A stretch of 58,705 nt of DNA, the filler included, from Platydemus manokwari (lineage: Eukaryota), in assembly GCA_037951405.1 (NCBI GenBank). It is 6 parts of 6 records of this genome, joined end to end, with 100 filler letters (N's around TTAATTAATTAA, not from the genome) between each part and the next. Parts side by side here need not be neighbours in the genome. Positions count along the whole stretch, not along the records: positions 11,697 to 20,608 come from JBBMOY011330983.1; 5 more parts are not named here. One strand, written 5' to 3'. This document shows, piece after piece, positions 2,064 to 20,608 of this stretch (position 1 is the first letter of the stretch; every line of letters begins with the position of its first letter). The position numbers were made by a program, and so were the translations under genes. The notes beneath the pieces were generated by a model that was given only the letters and a program-made list of their open reading frames with translations, was not told the DNA's origin and ran no database searches.

Positions 2064-4166
2064 CTGGAATAAAAGTCAATTCAATGAAAATAAATTTTAA
2101 ACCTTTATGGAAATTATTTTAATAAAATTTAATACTTAAGATTGAATTTAAATAAAAATATACGTTTTATTCAACTTTTTTTCCTTTAGATATCTATTTG
2201 AACAGAAAGGAATGAAAAAGCACTGTTGTAAGGAAATTTAAAATGCAAGTTAAATCTTTATTATACTTTCTATTAAAAAAAATAATTCTAAAATTACGCA
2301 ACATCATTTACCCATTACTATGAACACAAAATAAAGTAAATGTAAATTCATCTGAGCTTATAAAATATTTTACGATGATCATAATGAAATCAACATTTTT
2401 TAGGTTCTTCAAGTCATAATTTTCAAAAAGCCATGAAAATTTCAATTGAAATTACTGACCATTTCTGAAAGAAATTTTAGACATAAATGGGCGACTTTAA
2501 TCTACAGTTCTGTGCCTAGAACAAATGAAAATATTTTTCAATACTCATTACAAACATTATTTAGACAGGTAATTAATGATCAGGCAAATCATTTATTTAC
2601 AAGACTAACAATTTTTAAATCACTTTAAAATTAATCAAAGATAGTTGCTCTAATAATAGTATTTGCGGTCGTAGAATTATTGTAAAATATTGATTTATGC
2701 CATTCTTAGATGTCCATAAATACTACTTATAACTTTTTTATAATTGTAATTTAGAAATGCAAATAGTGAAGAAGCGACTAATCGTAAATTAACCACGTGT
2801 AAAAAACATTCCAATTACGATAATAATTAAAACGAGTCAGTAATAAAGAAATAATTTACTAACCAAAGTCTACAGAACAAAATCAAGATAATATTGTAAT
2901 AAAAAATTTTTTTTCACTGTAATCTCTAAAAGTCATTTAATATTGATTGATATTGTTTTGAAACAAAATGGAAAGTTAACGATAAACCAAACAATAAACG
3001 GAGAATAACTGTTCAATTCCAAAATAAAACGCAAAAAACGGTTCACTAAATTATGTAAAGATAGTTTAATGAAATGCAAATTTTTATTAATTCCTTTTTT
3101 AGATTGACTGAATAAATATAATTTTAAAAATTGGCTTTGTATTTGTACGAAATAAAATGCACAATTTCAGAATGAAAAATTGTATTTTTCAAGTATATAC
3201 AAGAATCAAAACATTTATTCACTTGAGTCTACTGAATTGCTGAATTTAATAATAGCTAAAGCATTCTTCTATGATTTTATCATTCGATGGCCTAATAAGA
3301 TAAACACAAAACTGACATAATCAAATACAGTTCAGTCTTATTTATTATCATAAATGAAATAAAATATCCTAAGACAATCATTTTGTGTGTAAGTTTATTG
3401 TGATGAAAATTCACAAATAAAATTTCATTTACATATACAAGTCAATATTGGGATGTTTAAGAATTAATAAGTATATTAAAACACGAGAGTGAATGAACAA
3501 GAATAAATTTCCAGTGATATTGAATATCGGTAACTAACTAATTACAAAAGTAAAACAGAAATGCAGGAATGTTGAAAAAAAGAATTTTATGTGATTTTAA
3601 TCTATTCAATATCGCAAATCATTAAGCTATGCATAAAATTAATAAAAAATCACATGCTCTAAAATAGCGTCATTTGAATAACAAAATAATCAAATCATTT
3701 TTATGTAATAATTAAATAACATTTTTCATTTAAATTGAAATTTTCCAAACCGAGAACAACTGGAATCAATTACATTTTTCCTAGTTACTCTTGATAATTA
3801 ATTTTTAATTTTCACACAACACACAATGTTCGTATTTAAGGATTTTCAACCAATAAAGTATTTAGTTACCATGACACCATCAGAACATTTACTAATAAAT
3901 TGATCTAATAACTGTGATCTTAAATAAGTCACTAACTATTCCTACTCTTAAATACGTTGACATTCTTATGCTGATGATATTAAATCATTTGAGTGAAAAA
4001 TGCAAAAATAAGAATATATTTGCATTTATTTTTGTAGTGCAACAGAATTTGAATGAGTCAAAATTATCAATATTTTATAAATCTTTAAAAATTAAAATGA
4101 TAGTGCTCGATTGAAATTTAAAGTGAGTTTGGATTTCAATTGTTAATTTAAAAAAATATCAAAACA

Positions 4167-11696: not shown

Positions 11697-14156
11697 TTAC
11701 ATTTAGCTGGAAGAATAGTTGTATCTAAATTACATAAAGAAACAAAATCCAAGTTTATCGATGTCATCACCGATTTATATAATGTCGTCGATCCAATCAC
11801 AGGTGAATCATTGAATAATATTGATGATGAAGTATATGAATGTATTCGAAATAATGCTACTAAATTGGAGAATGTTTTAAATTATGATCGTGATTATTAT
11901 ATCGAATATTTCGGAATTAAAGTAATTTTATTTAACTTTATTACTGACTTTTATATTTATTTAGACCTTAGAAGCTGTATATCTTTTAAAAATCAATAAT
12001 CGAATTGTAGAACGACCACAACATATGTTGATGAGAGTTGCGATTGGAATACATAAAAATGATATCGATAGTGCTGTAGAGGTAAATTAATTATTATAAA
12101 ATATTATTCCATCAATAATTATCATTGATTAGACTTATAACTTGATGTCAGAAAAATGGTTTATTCATGCAACACCAACATTGTTTAATTCTGGAACTAA
12201 ACGACCACAGCTTTCAAGTTGTTTTCTTTTAACTATGAGAGGTGATAGCTTAGACGGAATACATAGAACTATGAATGATTGTGCAACGATTGCCGAACAT
12301 GATGGTGGTATCGGATTGAATGCTCATTGCATCAAATCAAGGGATTTACAAAATGAACTTGCAAGAGAAGATGTCAATGGTCTCACTTCAGTTATACAGC
12401 TCTTTAATAACAGATCACGAAATGTAAATAAAGGAACTAAAAGACCAGGATCATTTGCATTTTATATTGAGCCATGGCATCCTGATATTTTGGAATTTTT
12501 GAATATCAGAAAGAATCACGGTGATGAATCAAAGAAAGCAAGAGACATATTTACTGCACTTTGGATACCAGATTTATTTATGAAACGAGTCAAGGACAAC
12601 GGTTCATGGACACTGATGGAACCCAATATTTGTACTGGATTATTTGATTGTTGGGGAGATGATTTTGAAAGACTTTACGAATCATATGAAAGTCAAGGAA
12701 AAGGTGTAAAAACCATAAATGCTAGAACTTTGTGGAAAGAAATACTTGATTCACAAATCGAGACCGGCACTCCATACATGCTGTACAAGGATTCGTGTAA
12801 TAGAAAATCTAATCATCAACATCTTGGAACAATCAAATGTAGTAATTTATGTACTGAAATCATTGAATATAGTGCACCTGATGAAGTGGCTGTTTGCAAT
12901 TTAGCTTCGATTTCGTTAACAAACTTTGTTGATCGAGAAAAGAAAACATTCGATTTCGATTCACTTGTTAAGGTTTGAATTAATGATAAAAATTGTAATT
13001 AATAATTTATAATATTTATCTCAGGTAACTGAAGTGATAACGAACAATCTCAATAAAATTATTGATATCAATTATTATCCATTGAAAGAAGCGAAAAATT
13101 CTAATTTAAGACATCGACCTATCGGAATAGGTGTTCAAGGATTGGCCGATGTATTTGCTTTATTGCGCTTTCCATTTGAAAGTAAAGAAGCAATGGAATT
13201 AAACAAAAGAATATTCGAAACAATTTATTTCAGTGCTCTTCAAAAATCGTGTAAATTAGCGAAAGAATTTGGAACTTACGAATCATACGAAGGTTCTCCT
13301 GTTAGTAAAGGAATTTTACAACCAGATATGTGGAATGTGCAATGTAGCGATAAACTAGATTGGCCACAATTAAGATCAGATATTGCAAGGTTTGGTTATT
13401 ATATTTATTTATTTATTTGATATATTTATGTTTTACTTTAGATACGGTGTAAGAAATAGTTTATTGGTTGCTCCTATGCCAACTGCAAGTACATCTCAGA
13501 TTCTTGGAAATAATGAATGTTTTGAACCTTTTACATCAAACATTTATATACGAAGAGTGTTGAGTGGCGAATATGTTGTCATTAATCGATATTTGATTGA
13601 AGATTTAATTAAATTGGATGTTTGGTCTGATGATATATCGAATGCTATTATTGCCAACAAAGGATCTGTTCAAAATATCAATGGTTTACCAGATCAATTG
13701 AAGGAATTATATAAAACAGTATGGGAAATTCCTCAAACTACTATAATTAACATGGCTGCTGATCGAGCTGCATTTATTGATCAAAGTCAAAGTATGAATT
13801 TACATGTTGCAGCTCCAAATTATCAAACATTGACAACATTGCATTTTCTTGCTTGGAAAAAGGTAATTGTTTGGTGATATTATTGATATATTCTTTATAA
13901 ATTTTTAATATAGGGATTGAAAACAGGTATGTATTACTTGAGAACCAGACCAGCAGCTGATCCAATTCAATTTACAATTGATAAAAGTAAAGCAAATTCT
14001 TTGGTTTTAAGCGATCAAGTAAAAAAGTTGTATGAATCGTTATATGGTAATAGAAATATCAGTGAAAAAGAAATTATCGAGAAACTTTCTCTTGAATCAG
14101 AGGCCAACACATGCTCACTTGTAAATAAAGAAAATTGTCGATCATGTCAAGGCTAA
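11697..14156 (+). CDS. RRM1: Ribonucleoside-diphosphate reductase large subunit (class Ia R1), 5'-truncated by spacer; exons <11697-11921, 11965-12081, 12133-12972, 13025-13389, 13442-13862, 13914-14156
   Basis: Motifs: [14 protein letters not shown] (end of ATP cone), [77 protein letters not shown] and C-terminal CRSC. Five GT-AG introns of 43-52 nt with consistent phases. Confidence 0.97.
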
Positions 14157-14182
14157 GTGAAATGTTATTGATTTATAAAAGA

Positions 14183-14188
14183 AATAAA
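14183..14188 (+). promoter_or_regulatory. Candidate polyadenylation signal of RRM1
   Basis: AATAAA starting 27 nt after the TAA stop; weak evidence in such AT-rich DNA. Confidence 0.4.
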
Positions 14189-15121
14189 AATTTTGAATCA
14201 CTTTTTTGATATAAGTTTTAAAATATTAAGATGCATAAACACATTTGAAATCTCGATATTATTCCACGACATTTCAATAATATAAACGAAGTTCACGAAA
14301 ACCTATATTGGCAAAACTTTAAAATGTTATTTTGAGATCTCTGTAATTCAATTTGAGATATTTTTCAAATATTTTTTTAATACTTATATACATGTTAATA
14401 ATATTTTATTTAAAGAAAATATAATAATTATTTTTAATTAATTATACTATTGAGTCGAGACGATCTTCCATAATTGCAGCTGAAGCAGTAATCCAATTTG
14501 AATGGGATTCGTGTGTTAAATTTTATTAAATTTCGAACTCTGACGGGATTTGTCCCAACAGCAATAAGGTGTCAAAGCTTTTTATCTGTTAACGCTTTAT
14601 AAACCTTGTTGTGGTTTGCGTATTTTTTTTTAATAATATAATAATTCTGAGTATTAGATTACTTGATTAATAGATCTCTGAATTGGTATGTATTCGCTTA
14701 GCATTTTTTGAGACTTCTTTCGCTCCACCCGTCTCCGTTTCGAAACACCGACAGGCGAAACAAGACATTATCCGCTCTACAAAAACAATCACCTTTGCTC
14801 TTGAAGGCTATGAAAGATCCGCAAGTTCCACGTATCCCTAAGCCTATGGATGTCTAAAACAGGACCAGTTTTCACTAAAAGGAAAGATTATTTATTTATA
14901 TTTTTTGCAATTTGTTTAGATACTTAATATATTTATTTCAATTAAATTTTTTATTTTGTTTAAATTATATCTCATTAAAATCGTAAGACAATTTTTTCAT
15001 TTTAATTTAAATCATCAGAAATATCTTCTAAATCAAAATCAGTAGTTTTGGTAATTCCAGTCAGAAAGTTTAAAATTTAGAGAATATTAGTGATGAATTT
15101 AATTATAATTTAAGATAAAAT

Positions 15122-15790
15122 GAAAAAGTGAATATTTGCGATAAATGTTGTTCATAGTTTGTAAAAGAAAGTAATTTCATTAAACATCAGTAAATGTGAG
15201 GTGAAGATGGTAAGGGTATAATAACAAGATTAGTTAGTCCAAGTAAACAAAATAATATTTTAAAATTTAAAAACCATAACCATCAAATACCAATTCCATT
15301 TATAATAGTGGATGATACAGAATGTGTTAATATAGAAACCAATAAATCAAGAGGTAAAGAAACAAAAGTTAAATGTAATCAAGTATCTTCTTGGTGTTTA
15401 TTTAAAATTAATTTCAAGATATCCGGATCTAATTGAAATGAAGGCCAATTATTTCAAGGAGAAAATTTCAGAGATTATGATCATTATGTCAGAGAAAAAA
15501 ATTATGGGGCAGCTGCATGTGAAGAATGTAATTTATTAGCTAGGAAATCAAAAGATTTTCCATTATATTTTCATAATGGTTCTAAATATAATTTTCATTT
15601 AATAATAAAAGAACTTGCAAAGAGATCTGAGAAAAAATTGCAAATATTATCATTAACTGAAGAAACTTATATCTCTTTTAATTATGGTTGTACAATATTC
15701 AGAGATTCATTAAGATTATTGAAAAACTCTTTAGACTACAAAGATTATAGTGAACTTAACATCAAAAATTATAAAATTAGCGTTACATAA
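15122..15790 (+). pseudogene. Polinton/Maverick-type protein-primed DNA polymerase B, N-terminal and exonuclease fragment (decayed, internally deleted)
   Basis: One frame with stops reads ICDKCCS*F..ESNFIKH (C2H2-like), then ILKFKNHNHQIPIPFIIVDDTEC (like LKFKN..Q..PF.IYADFE, Exo I), then RDYDHYVREKNYGAAACEECNL (like RDHCH..GKYRGAAH..CNL), FPLYFHNGSKYNFHLIIKELA (Exo II), EETYISF and FRDSLRLLKNSLD. No introns. Absent from the ORF track. Confidence 0.85.
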
Positions 15791-15889
15791 TTTTGATCAA
15801 AAGAGATTTATTTGTGAGAAAAGTATGAAAACCCTTCCATTTTGTAGACGGCATTGATACTAAACCTTCAATTTTTTAATTCAACCACA

Positions 15890-16375
15890 TTAAATTATTA
15901 TTTATAATTTCTATTTCAAGGTTATTAGCATTTCGAATTTGATTATTTATCATTTATAAATCAATTTTATTACTTTTCACTTTATTTTTTCCAGCTTTTA
16001 AAGGTTGAAGATTTGTCCAATTATAACATTTTTTAATATTTTCTTCAAGTGTAAAATTGAATTTATTTCGTGGTAAAACATGATCAATATGCCAATAACT
16101 TCCATAATTTTCCCAAGACACATTTTCCCTAACCAATTTTCTAATTGATCACATGAACAACAAAGATATTTATTTAAAGTATCAGAATTTATATTTTCAG
16201 TTATAGCTTTTGATATTGAATTTTGTAGATGCTTTTGTCTTCTCACTGGATGGAAATTATAATATCTAAGTTTCTGATATTCATTAAACACTCTTTTATG
16301 ATTTGATAATATTCTTTCAGATTATCAAATATTTCTTCTCGATTATTTTGATAATATTTACGTTTTATTGATATA
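15890..16375 (-). pseudogene. HNH (beta-beta-alpha-Me) endonuclease of the type seen in large DNA viruses and Polinton-like elements, frameshifted
   Basis: KYYQNNREEI helical N-terminus, YLCCSCDQLENWL, a frameshift near 16130, then SWENYGSYWHIDHVLP...KKCYNWTNLQPL...NKVKSNK. No introns. Confidence 0.75.
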
Positions 16376-16379
16376 TAAC

Positions 16380-19300
16380 TGTAATAAAGAATTGTAGAAT
16401 ATTAATATTTATTAAATCAAAAGTTATACAACTATTATAGTATTTTAACAAATAGGCATATATCATATCCGTCCGTCTTCGGAAAAGCCTGCGTCTAGGT
16501 AAATCAGTTATCTTGCTGTTTTTTTATTTCTGGTGGACCTCTTCGTTTTCTCGCCCGTGTTTGGTAATATCTCCATTTTTAAGTCATCATTTCTGTTGAT
16601 GATGCTTTACCGCTTGTTCATACTTTCGATACTAGTATCATTGTCCCTTATACCATCATCATTTGCAATATTATCTCTATTCCCGATTTTCTTTACTTGA
16701 TTATAGTTTCGTTGAATAATTTTATTCAATTTTTGATTTTGGAGTTTGTTAGTCGATGCATTGATTTTCTCTTAAATCTTGAATGGGCCCTGCAAATTTT
16801 TTACCAAACATTTTGTAAAACGAATTTTCAACCATCACTGTATCACCAGCTGATAATTCATGGGAATATTTCCATCGGTTATAGTATTCTGCTTACTTCA
16901 CAATCTGATTCTTACTATAATTCTGTACTTCAAAAATTTATGATGATTCATAAACTCTTTAATGGTTTTCCTTTTATATGACCTTGCCTCATTAATAAAT
17001 AGCCGTGGTTTTGTACCGAAAAGAACTTCGAATAGCGAATACTTCACTGATTTGTGAGGTGACATCCGTAACCCATATTCAACGTGTGTTGTTACGTTAT
17101 ACCCCTAATGAGTGATTGTTCAATGATGCTGTAATCATAATTTTCATTTTCTTCAAAGTTCTCTCAATGTACCGATTTGACTGTGGATAATATGGAGAAG
17201 AAAATGTTGTCTTTATTTCCACACATAATTTGGATATTAATGTCAATTGAAAATTTGTTCCGTTGTCCGAGTGAACACATTCCAGATCTCAAAATTTGCT
17301 TATCCATTCTTTCCATAATGTCTTAGCTACATTTTCTACAGTGATATACTTTAATTGGATTAGCGTTACATGTTTGGAAAAATAATTAATGATACTTAGT
17401 ATAAACCGGTTTCCTTGCTTCGTTTCAGGATATGGTTCTGCAATATCGATACCAACAATTTCGAACGGCTTATTTGTAATTATTGATTGCAATTTAGCTT
17501 TATTTCTTCCATCAATTCCTTGGATGATGAGCATTCAATACACGAATGCACGTATTCGTGAATATATTTCCTACAGGCTGACCAATAAAATTCGTTTTCA
17601 ACAACTCCAGTTGTTTTCTCTATCCCAACATGTCCTGATTTTTCATGGATCATTTGAACACAAGTTTTAATATCACATTGAGGTACTATATAACTATAAA
17701 TTCCATTTTTCTTGTGGTATAATGCATCACCTCTATCTCTCAAGTATTCTTTCTGTTCCAAATATTTTAATGAAGAATTTTTGATGAATTTATGGCAATC
17801 TCTCTAAAAATTGAATTTGAGTTCTTTGTTCTTATCTAAAATTTTGTTTTATTCCACTTGACACAAAACTGTCTCATCTTCGTAACACGATACATCGCTT
17901 TTTATATATTTCACCTTTATATCAAATATTTTTTGTATAGTATTGCTTGAGATTTGAATTCATAGCCTTTAATCTACCGATGATGTCCTTTTCTGATTTT
18001 ATATGTGTCAGATCCCATTGCATATCTAAATCTTCGAATTCAGTATTTTTTTAATCTTCAATATTTATTCACTAAAATCTTTTATAATATCTTTAGCTTT
18101 TATTATTTCTTCTTCAGTTAATATATTATTCTCCAAAGGTTTTACTTGGAATAAATATAATTTATCAATACCATGTTTAATCGTTTCAGAAACTTCCTTA
18201 CACGTTTTTTTTATTTTACTATTTAATCCAAATTGAAAAGACTCTCCAATAATCAATTTTATTATTGCGAATAAATTAACTCCTACTCCATAATATAAAG
18301 TAATTACCAGCAAAATTCCAACACCGGAAAGAGGGGGTAAAATACTTGACACAACCCCTAAAACTCCGCAAGATATGAAAATTGAATACTTTAAACAATT
18401 ATCGACTTTACTCCATTTATTTTTAATTTACTATGATGCTTTAATGGTTCTTCTAAAACTCTTCAATTCTAATATTAATATTTACTTTTAATGCATTGTT
18501 TTCATAACTCCGATAAGATGGACTCATATCTTTAGAATCTGGTGAGGCACTAGGACTATTAAAATTATCAATATTGGGATGCAATTTTTGATCTTCCATT
18601 TTATTCGTTTTAAAATAAAATTTAGGAATATTCTAAATCAGAATAATTTTCTGTAAATAAATCATTGATTTCTAATCTTTCTTTATCAGTTAAAATTTTA
18701 ACCGTCACTAAAATTCCAGGAGATTACTATTTGATGGTTTATTTGGAAATATATTTCCAATAAATAAATTAATTTCTTATGAAGTCTTTAACTCTTTAAG
18801 AAATTTACAATATTTGTTTAATTTTCTCGATTTCCTATATATAATTTCCTATATATAATAACTAATTCATCAAAATTTTTATATTCTGCTAATGCTATTG
18901 GACTCCAAAATATGGATATTATTCCTCTTTTAAATTGGTCTATAACCATTTGTTCTCGGCCCTCTACAGATACATATTTGCTATAATCCTTAATCACTAA
19001 TTCTTTTAATGCCATAGAATATTCTCCTACACTCTCTCCAGACATTTGGTATCTATCATTAAACTATTTTACATAGAATTCATGCACATCATTTTCCATA
19101 ACTAATTTGCTTTTTAACTCCTTAACTAAATCCTTATAACTTTTAATTTCGCGAATATCTAATCCTTGAAATGTTTGTAATGCATATGATTTTAAATACA
19201 ATGACAGTCTTTGAATTTTTTCCGCCTGTGTCCAGTCATATGCCTCAGTTAATCTATCATATTCATTGAAGAAATGATCGAACCCTTCTTGTCTCCCATC

Positions 19301-19860
19301 ATAGGGGTTAATTGGTATGTACACATTTTTGCTACTCATAATTACTTCATTCATTTTGTCTAATGATGCTTTACTATTTATTTCAATTTGGGTGCCTACT
19401 ATTATTTTATCAACTATTTCACTATCAATTTGGGTGCTTATGTCTTTTTCAATGGTGCTTATTTCTTTTAAACTATCCTCTAATACTTTGTTGAGTTTGA
19501 ATCACTGGTTTCAGGTAAATTACTGCTATTGGGTTTTATCTACTCAAGATTAATGCTATGATTCTCTTTGCTACTATTTTCGAATTCACTATCGCTACTG
19601 TAATTTTCACTATTAATTTTTCTTCTTACTAAATGTTTGTTCACTATGTCCAAATTTTCTAATAAATTGCTTTTGGTTGAACTACGTAGTCGTCTATCAG
19701 ATTTATCAAGTATTGAATTTGCAGATCCTATTTTATCTATTTATCACTCAATGCGTTAATTTATCAATTTATCAAATCGCTCAATGCGTAATCAATATAA
19801 TAGCGCTTAAAAATCATATTGAACAGGCAATTTTTTTCTCTATGCTCACGTTAACCGCCA
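16380..19860 (-). mobile_element. Decayed Ty3/Gypsy LTR retrotransposon (gag, RNase H tail, integrase; RT not recognisable)
   Basis: Gag capsid-like YDG...FFNEYDRLTEAYDWT..EKIQRLSLYLK..A (19064-19354) and GESVGEY...L...DQFKRGI (18818-19045). Integrase H2C2 HEKSGHVG...YVHSCIEC (17480-17761) and core PFEIVGIDIA.P..T..GNRFIL, HSDNGTNF, SPYYPQSN (about 17170-17480). PBS-like TGGCGGTTAACGTG at 19860-19847. Many stops and frameshifts. Confidence 0.88.
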
Positions 19861-20608
19861 AATTTTCGAGCGTCTTCAATGTGAAATCAAACTTCAATTA
19901 AAATCAAACTGCTTAAGTCTATTAACGTTTTTCGCATATTTTTAATCAACACTTTTCGTGGAGTAAACTAGACCTATTAAGTTATCAATCTTTTTACTAA
20001 TTAATGTCACTTAGAGCAGAGTGTAGACCTCTCAAATTGTTAACTTTGTTGCTATAAAGTTTAAAACCTTAATCTGTTTTTCTTCTTTTTATATATCTGT
20101 TGAGGTTCCGAGAAAACAGACTATAAAAACAATGCATGTTATGATATCGGTGTATATTAGTATCACTTTTTATTATTTTTTAAATAATGGGATGTGCAAA
20201 ATATTAACTTACCTTTTTATTTTTATTTTTATTCTTGTTAAAAGAACAACAAAATAATCTTAATTTTAAATTAATTGGAAAAACCTTTTGGTCGTCAAAT
20301 AATGATAATATTTAATCAAGACAGTTTTAAAGAAAATTCTAGTTGTAAATTGAAATATTAAGTTAGAATATTAAATATTTCGATTAAAGTTAATATCATA
20401 TTTTTTATCATATTTTAATATGAAAATAATTTAGAATTAAATTCGGTTAATATTTGGATAAAAAACTTAGAATAAATTTGGAATAAATTGATAAAATATT
20501 AGGTTGTAAATAAAGTTCGCGGACAAAATTTGAAATAAAAATTTGTTGTACATAAATTTATTTAAAACAACAACTATCCCTCAAAATAAAGTCCGTCATT
20601 ATCAATAA

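Follow-up and report, generated by a model that had tools for sequence, protein, structure and literature searches.

The stretch of DNA analysed here (58,705 nucleotides, hereafter the window) is drawn from the Platydemus manokwari assembly GCA_037951405.1, and its positions 11,697-20,608 come from record JBBMOY011330983.1. At the left end of this piece, at 11697-14156 on the plus strand, lies a gene for the alpha subunit of a class Ia RNR, which we refer to as window RRM1. A splice model combined with translation gives six exons that hold the last 737 codons of the gene (Table 1). The five introns between them measure 43, 51, 52, 52 and 51 nt, each of the five begins with GT and ends with AG, and the joined exons (2211 nt) form a single open frame of 736 amino acids closed by a TAA codon at 14154-14156. 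The 5′ part of the gene is cut off by the piece edge at 11697; the N-terminal ATP cone (A-site, PF03477) would lie upstream, outside the piece. Pfam profiles placed the barrel domain (PF02867) on exons 3, 4 and 5, covering profile positions 1-515 of 523 with E-values from 1e-91 to 3e-40, and the end of the all-alpha N domain (PF00317) at the start of exon 3 (29.7 bits, cut-off 28), while exons 1 and 2 align with human residues 75-188. Residues are given in human numbering throughout; it was set with phmmer against PDB, where exon 3 residue 1 corresponds to residue 189 of human RRM1 (3hnc, E = 1e-112). The host DNA has a GC content of about 28% and introns of about 50 nt, and is eukaryotic.

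Table 1. Positions of window RRM1, its functional elements and neighbouring features, counted along the whole window.
Feature	Position	Strand	Remarks
Exon 1 (partial)	11697-11921	+	human residues ~75-149
Exon 2	11965-12081	+	human 150-188; carries TLEAVY where human has TLERSY
Exon 3	12133-12972	+	human 189-468; C218, S-site module, N427/C429/E431, C444
Exon 4	13025-13389	+	barrel domain (Pfam)
Exon 5	13442-13862	+	barrel domain (Pfam); includes phosphate-binding stretch
Exon 6 (last)	13914-14156	+	YY pair and C-terminal CRSC, then stop
C218 (redox-active cysteine)	12220-12222	+	alignment to human RRM1
Rewritten S-site/dimer-interface block	12250-12450	+	~67 residues, human 228-295
K243E (GAA)	12295-12297	+	neighbours S242A, A245D; peptide IAEHDGG
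R256K and replaced loop 1	12334-12381	+	human 256-271; R256K codon 12334-12336
Loop 2	12421-12450	+	Y285N, D287N, Q288K, one-residue deletion and N291T relative to human YVDQGGNKRPG
N427, C429 (thiyl radical), E431	12844-12858	+	alignment to human RRM1
C444	12895-12897	+	alignment to human RRM1
Y737/Y738 (radical-transfer tyrosines)	13932-13937	+	within GMYYLRTRP, last exon
C-terminal CxxC (CRSC)	14136-14147	+	CRSCQG-stop
Short G+C-richer islands	14700-14880, 16450-16560		within very AT-rich spacer
117-aa open stretch	15437-15787	+	start of type-B DNA polymerase (organellar/viral), PF03175, E = 1e-5, 25.0 bits, cut-off 25.8
64-aa open stretch	15957-16148	-	WHIDH...N...N, HNH-like look; weak Pfam match to GmrSD_C, E = 0.019
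Decayed LTR-retrotransposon remains	16900-19500	-	broken by stops and frame changes
Integrase core, weak match	17100-17288		
Integrase zinc-binding H2C2	17480-17758	-	PF17921, E = 3e-13
Gag-like open stretches	18821-19501	-	no Pfam match

Beyond the gene, the piece contains remains of mobile elements and short open stretches (Table 1). The polymerase-like stretch probably represents part of a Maverick/Polinton-like or plasmid-like element. Rfam gave no match over the piece (11,697-20,608), the two G+C-richer islands included.

An initial sequence-only reading of this DNA had described a clean frame, clean splicing and an intact catalytic apparatus. Our gene model agrees with it: the redox-active cysteine, the N427/C429/E431 set, C444, the pair of radical-transfer tyrosines and the C-terminal CxxC were all found at their expected positions. 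Window RRM1 shares its fold and domains with human RRM1 and yeast Rnr1 (3hnc, 1zyz), and outside the block described below it is about 60-65% identical to them. By fold and catalytic residues, as read from the alignment, it is a member of the class Ia RNR alpha family, with a regulation that would be atypical.

The atypical part is a block at the specificity site (S-site) and dimer interface that comprises helix A, the K243 region, loop 1, helix B and loop 2. Compared with canonical RNR alpha, residues S242, K243, A245, R256, I262, G264-S269, P274-L276, T282, Y285, D287 and Q288 are all replaced, and loop 2 is shorter. Loop 1 is replaced relative to human IRATGSYIAGTNGNSNG, and the loop-1 invariants I262, G264, T265, G267 and S269 are absent. 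The S-site residues that are retained are D226, the GGIG motif (G246-G249), N270/G271, K292, R293, P294 and G295; among the elements that mark a canonical S-site (D226, S242/K243, R256 and the loops), D226, K292 and R293 alone remain. Alignment to human RRM1 bore out the changes that had been listed from the sequence, namely K243E, R256K, the replaced loop 1 and, in loop 2, Y285N, D287N, Q288K and the deletion of one residue. A further change pointed out at the same time, TLERSY to TLEAVY in exon 2, is a real substitution, but one of little weight, as the two columns concerned are 48% and 73% conserved. AlphaFold2 gave a low-confidence model of the exon-3 fragment (mean pLDDT 57, below 50 across loop 1).

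The nearest relatives of window RRM1 among 5.8 billion proteins are two sequences, P0151 (71% over exon 3) and P0157 (66%). Both carry other oddities of window RRM1, including NHQHLG, and both have a canonical S-site, in which ISKHAGG, CIRSTG..GTNG.SNG and ARYVDQGGNKRPG are kept. The source of P0151 is a pair of ENA metagenome contigs, L001 and L079 (98.7% mutual identity), and in both of them the three intron positions around exons 3-5 match those of window RRM1. The rewritten block itself has no counterpart among the protein matches obtained from the 5.8 billion proteins. Searching 50%-cluster representatives returned matches of at most 59% identity, close kin being absent from that set, and the exon-3 ORF product had no exact match on record. 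When peptide patterns of the rewritten block were run against JGI metagenomes, canonical RNRs alone were retrieved, at 45% identity, and a literature search for paralogs with a rewritten S-site yielded nothing pertinent. On the sequences compared, the rewriting of the S-site is confined to the lineage of window RRM1. A viral origin of the gene was considered and rejected: the best IMG/VR match (61%) is of the canonical type and no nearer than cellular sequences, and spliceosomal introns are common to window RRM1 and its cellular sister.

Several features of the sister contigs and of the window gene were recorded alongside. On L079 the last intron of window RRM1 is missing and exons 5 and 6 are fused (2084-2746), and exons 1 and 2 were not found in the 780 nt that precede exon 3. 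The same contig has, at 3095-3163, a 98.5% identical piece of exon 5, about 350 nt past the stop and at the contig end, which points to either an incomplete tandem duplication or an assembly repeat. On L001 an A run is one base short (1975-1985), which breaks the frame of exon 5; since the nearly identical L079 is intact there, we take the break to be an assembly error and not the mark of a pseudogene. In window RRM1 two other rare residues, C352E and P357T (human C352 and P357, listed for the 12961-12969 region), lie outside the rewritten block. In the C352 column window RRM1 has E and the sister lineage D, and P357T was found in window RRM1 alone.

To place the divergence along the protein, the spliced product of window RRM1 was aligned with 178 homologs. 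It differs at 18 of the 173 columns with a conservation of 90% or more. Among such columns 14 of 23 deviate within human 239-291, compared with 4 of 150 elsewhere (Fisher test, P = 1.4e-11). All 178 homologs have R256 and Q288; window RRM1 has K at both. Extreme deviations, defined as columns at least 80% conserved in the family where no more than 2% of homologs share the residue of window RRM1, were sought over the whole protein, and 20 out of 22 fell within human 232-288. The specificity-site elements had been said to have diverged as a group, and this scoring of conservation agrees: divergence is concentrated in the S-site instead of being spread evenly over the protein.

Relative-rate counts, for which either the family consensus or single sequences served as the outgroup, gave the same distribution. 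Within the block (human 228-295) there are 26 changes unique to window RRM1 versus 2 unique to the sister, a roughly 13-fold difference (P = 3e-6). Everything outside the block adds up to 31 versus 29, with 11 versus 14 in the rest of exon 3, 10 versus 9 in exon 4, 7 versus 4 in exon 5 and 3 versus 2 in exon 6. Relative to the sister, dN reaches 0.41 in the block, against 0.15 in other parts, with synonymous sites saturated (pS about 0.8). Canonical pairs are 0.70-0.85 identical in the block, equal to or above the rest of the exon, whereas window RRM1 compared with canonical sequences shows identities of 0.37-0.46 in the block and 0.67-0.80 in the rest. The length of the block is unchanged save one residue, and its frame is kept. 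Because changes in the block are so unequally shared between the two lineages and those in the rest so evenly, the catalytic body remains under constraint, and the S-site/dimer-interface module has been released or remodelled. Two simple causes were tried and rejected. A compensated frameshift does not account for the block, since its alternative frames are unlike canonical sequence and score 18-20, against 148 in frame, and AT pressure does not either, with a block GC of 0.363 versus 0.34 for the rest of the exon.

We then turned to other copies of the gene. Among public sequencing runs the stretch is present in one only, X1 (Logan contigs); none of the RNA runs among them has window RRM1. 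At a likeness of at least 80%, X1 holds 64 contig pieces, of which 24 are at least 99% alike, 9 fall at 95-99%, 12 at 90-95% and 19 below 90%. Window-type contigs (at least 99%) span the block, and about half of the depth at 12339-12378 is window-type. A close variant differs there by one silent change and four loop-1 replacements (R70K, R78S, V81L and N82K in exon-3 numbering). Of the more distant contigs, one of 1826 nt (~84%) aligns with 12130-12197 and 12439-13318, the 241 nt between (12198-12438) being unmatched, and one of 556 nt (~92%) aligns with 12012-12282 and again from 12376, with 12283-12375 skipped. The X1 sample has further versions of the gene whose likeness to the window is lost at the S-site block, as judged from contig alignments. 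The contig depth of the copies is alike, about 9-19, which fits a single genome, contig depth being weak evidence on this point. Given the 4:1 ratio of replacement to silent changes between the two window-type versions, constraint on loop 1 appears low; this suggests, on five differences only, a better fit to loss than to a new fixed binding site.

At six positions (11879, 12924, 14012, 14016, 14039 and 14105) the window letter is absent from all X1 contigs, and the difference at 12924 is N378K. These six fixed differences mean that X1 is another strain at least, or that the window has private variants, and on account of them X1 counts, as a partly independent source, against an assembly artefact. 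Several similar copies in one sample do invite mis-joins, and the block could in principle be a chimera formed inside exon 3; yet the window-type contigs of X1 cover it and make up about half of the depth in loop 1, X1 is not simply the same assembly, and the block is in frame, its other frames holding nothing like canonical sequence. We regard an artefact as extremely improbable.

The gene might instead be a redundant duplicate that is turning into a pseudogene and whose S-site happened to decay first. Decayed mobile elements do adjoin it, no public RNA run contains it, and loop 1 is apparently under low constraint. However, the frame of 2211 nt is open, all five introns have kept their GT..AG borders, and lineage-unique changes outside the block are as many in window RRM1 as in its sister (31 versus 29, though with synonymous sites saturated). 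Neutral decay would not leave 670 codons and all catalytic residues untouched, and we consider this course of events very unlikely.

Specificity regulation is what chiefly safeguards dNTP balance and replication fidelity. It seems to be universal in RNRs of every class, with a few class I enzymes of Herpesviridae as the reported exceptions (review PMC3267527). The signal that reaches the catalytic site is relayed between subunits by loop 2 (PMC3483043). A saturating screen in yeast found dNTP pools to be perturbed by single changes at S242, K243, A245, R256 and I262, as well as at T265, G267, S269, P274, M275, T282, A283, Y285 and N291, and rnr1-K243E proved to be a strong mutator in which dGTP is very high (PMC6326808). 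Q288 touches every substrate but GDP, and yeast rnr1-D287N and Q288E were unobtainable as sole alleles (PMC2896522). Window RRM1 is altered at every position from the yeast screen and at both D287 and Q288. Among the yeast rnr1 mutants K243E, R256H, S269P, Y285A/C, D287N and Q288A/E, all at positions changed here, K243E and D287N are identical to the window residues, and further single changes (S242T, A245V, I262, T265A and G267C) also match altered positions. The yeast mutants are single laboratory changes with a fitness cost, while window RRM1 has accumulated about 26 natural changes in one module. Since single substitutions at the same positions in yeast derange dNTP pools or are inviable, loss or rewiring of the canonical effector control would be the most reasonable reading of the block.

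The explanation we favour, and hold to be moderately probable on these comparisons, is that window RRM1 encodes a functional, catalytically competent RNR alpha whose module at human 228-295 escaped the canonical constraint and was rewritten, while purifying selection continued on the remainder of the enzyme, and whose specificity control would be lost or altered. In the triphosphate pocket E243 and D245 would take the place of K243 and A245. Binding of effectors in the canonical manner, and the relay through loop 2, would be lost or deeply altered; catalysis, radical transfer and re-reduction would remain. The protein would have a fixed, effector-independent substrate preference, or would pair with a canonical alpha copy. 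Against this, some nucleotide binding may persist, as D226, GGIG, N270-G271 and K292/R293 are kept and R256K is conservative. A stronger version, which we put forward tentatively, is that window RRM1 may be the first cellular class Ia R1 devoid of dNTP-effector specificity control, either constitutively dimer-competent or a heterodimer partner, and with a fixed preference.

Viral enzymes offer two partial parallels. R1 of the HSV-1 type may resemble window RRM1 in lacking specificity control, a likeness drawn here from sequence, but it is viral, whereas window RRM1 is cellular and contains introns. Betaherpesvirus R1 homologs of the M45/UL45 type have lost their catalytic residues; they too are diverged R1 proteins put to other use, but window RRM1 retains all of these residues.

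The block could also represent an S-site that still works with altered chemistry, responding to different or narrower effectors in a new regulated scheme of specificity. This would accord with the retention of D226, G246-G249, N270/G271, K292 and R293, with the preserved charge in R256K and with a block that is in frame and conserved in length but for one residue. On the other hand, the charge of K243 is reversed and position 245, in the triphosphate pocket, has become acidic, every loop-1 residue invariant in the 178 homologs is gone, the X1 variant with its excess of replacements has the look of low constraint in loop 1, and the block is without counterpart in the collections searched. We consider a retuned site unlikely.

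The sequence-only reading had left two alternatives, a specialised paralog or a sole copy that skews dNTP pools and so might bear on the AT-rich genome. The first is favoured by the presence in X1 of other versions that match the flanks of the S-site block and not the block itself, and window RRM1 is probably a specialised extra copy rather than the sole R1. Yeast Rnr3 would be a parallel, as a second large-subunit gene that can support or alter RNR output; it retains a canonical S-site, and in window RRM1 it is the S-site that has changed. In yeast, loop-2 mutants survive via Rnr3 (PMC2896522).

An organism living with window RRM1 as its only R1 would have unregulated specificity and skewed dNTP pools, perhaps tied to AT-richness, and we think this rather improbable. 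In its favour, the other copies are known only as contig alignments, and the nearest database relatives are about 70% identical, in a lineage that is poorly sampled. Yet X1 contains several diverged versions at similar contig depth, and in yeast D287N or Q288E is inviable as the only allele and K243E is a strong mutator. The proposed link with AT content found no support: other copies appear to exist, the block is not AT-enriched, and the yeast K243E and Q288A mutants point to an excess of dGTP and not of dATP or dTTP.

If window RRM1 is indeed an extra, catalytically competent alpha subunit that has lost or altered its specificity control, it would provide a natural test of how far dimerisation, substrate switching and fidelity depend on the S-site, and would show how a cell tolerates or exploits an unregulated reductase beside regulated ones. 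Should the duplicate turn out to be silent or marginal, it would still be a clear case of module-specific release of constraint after gene duplication.
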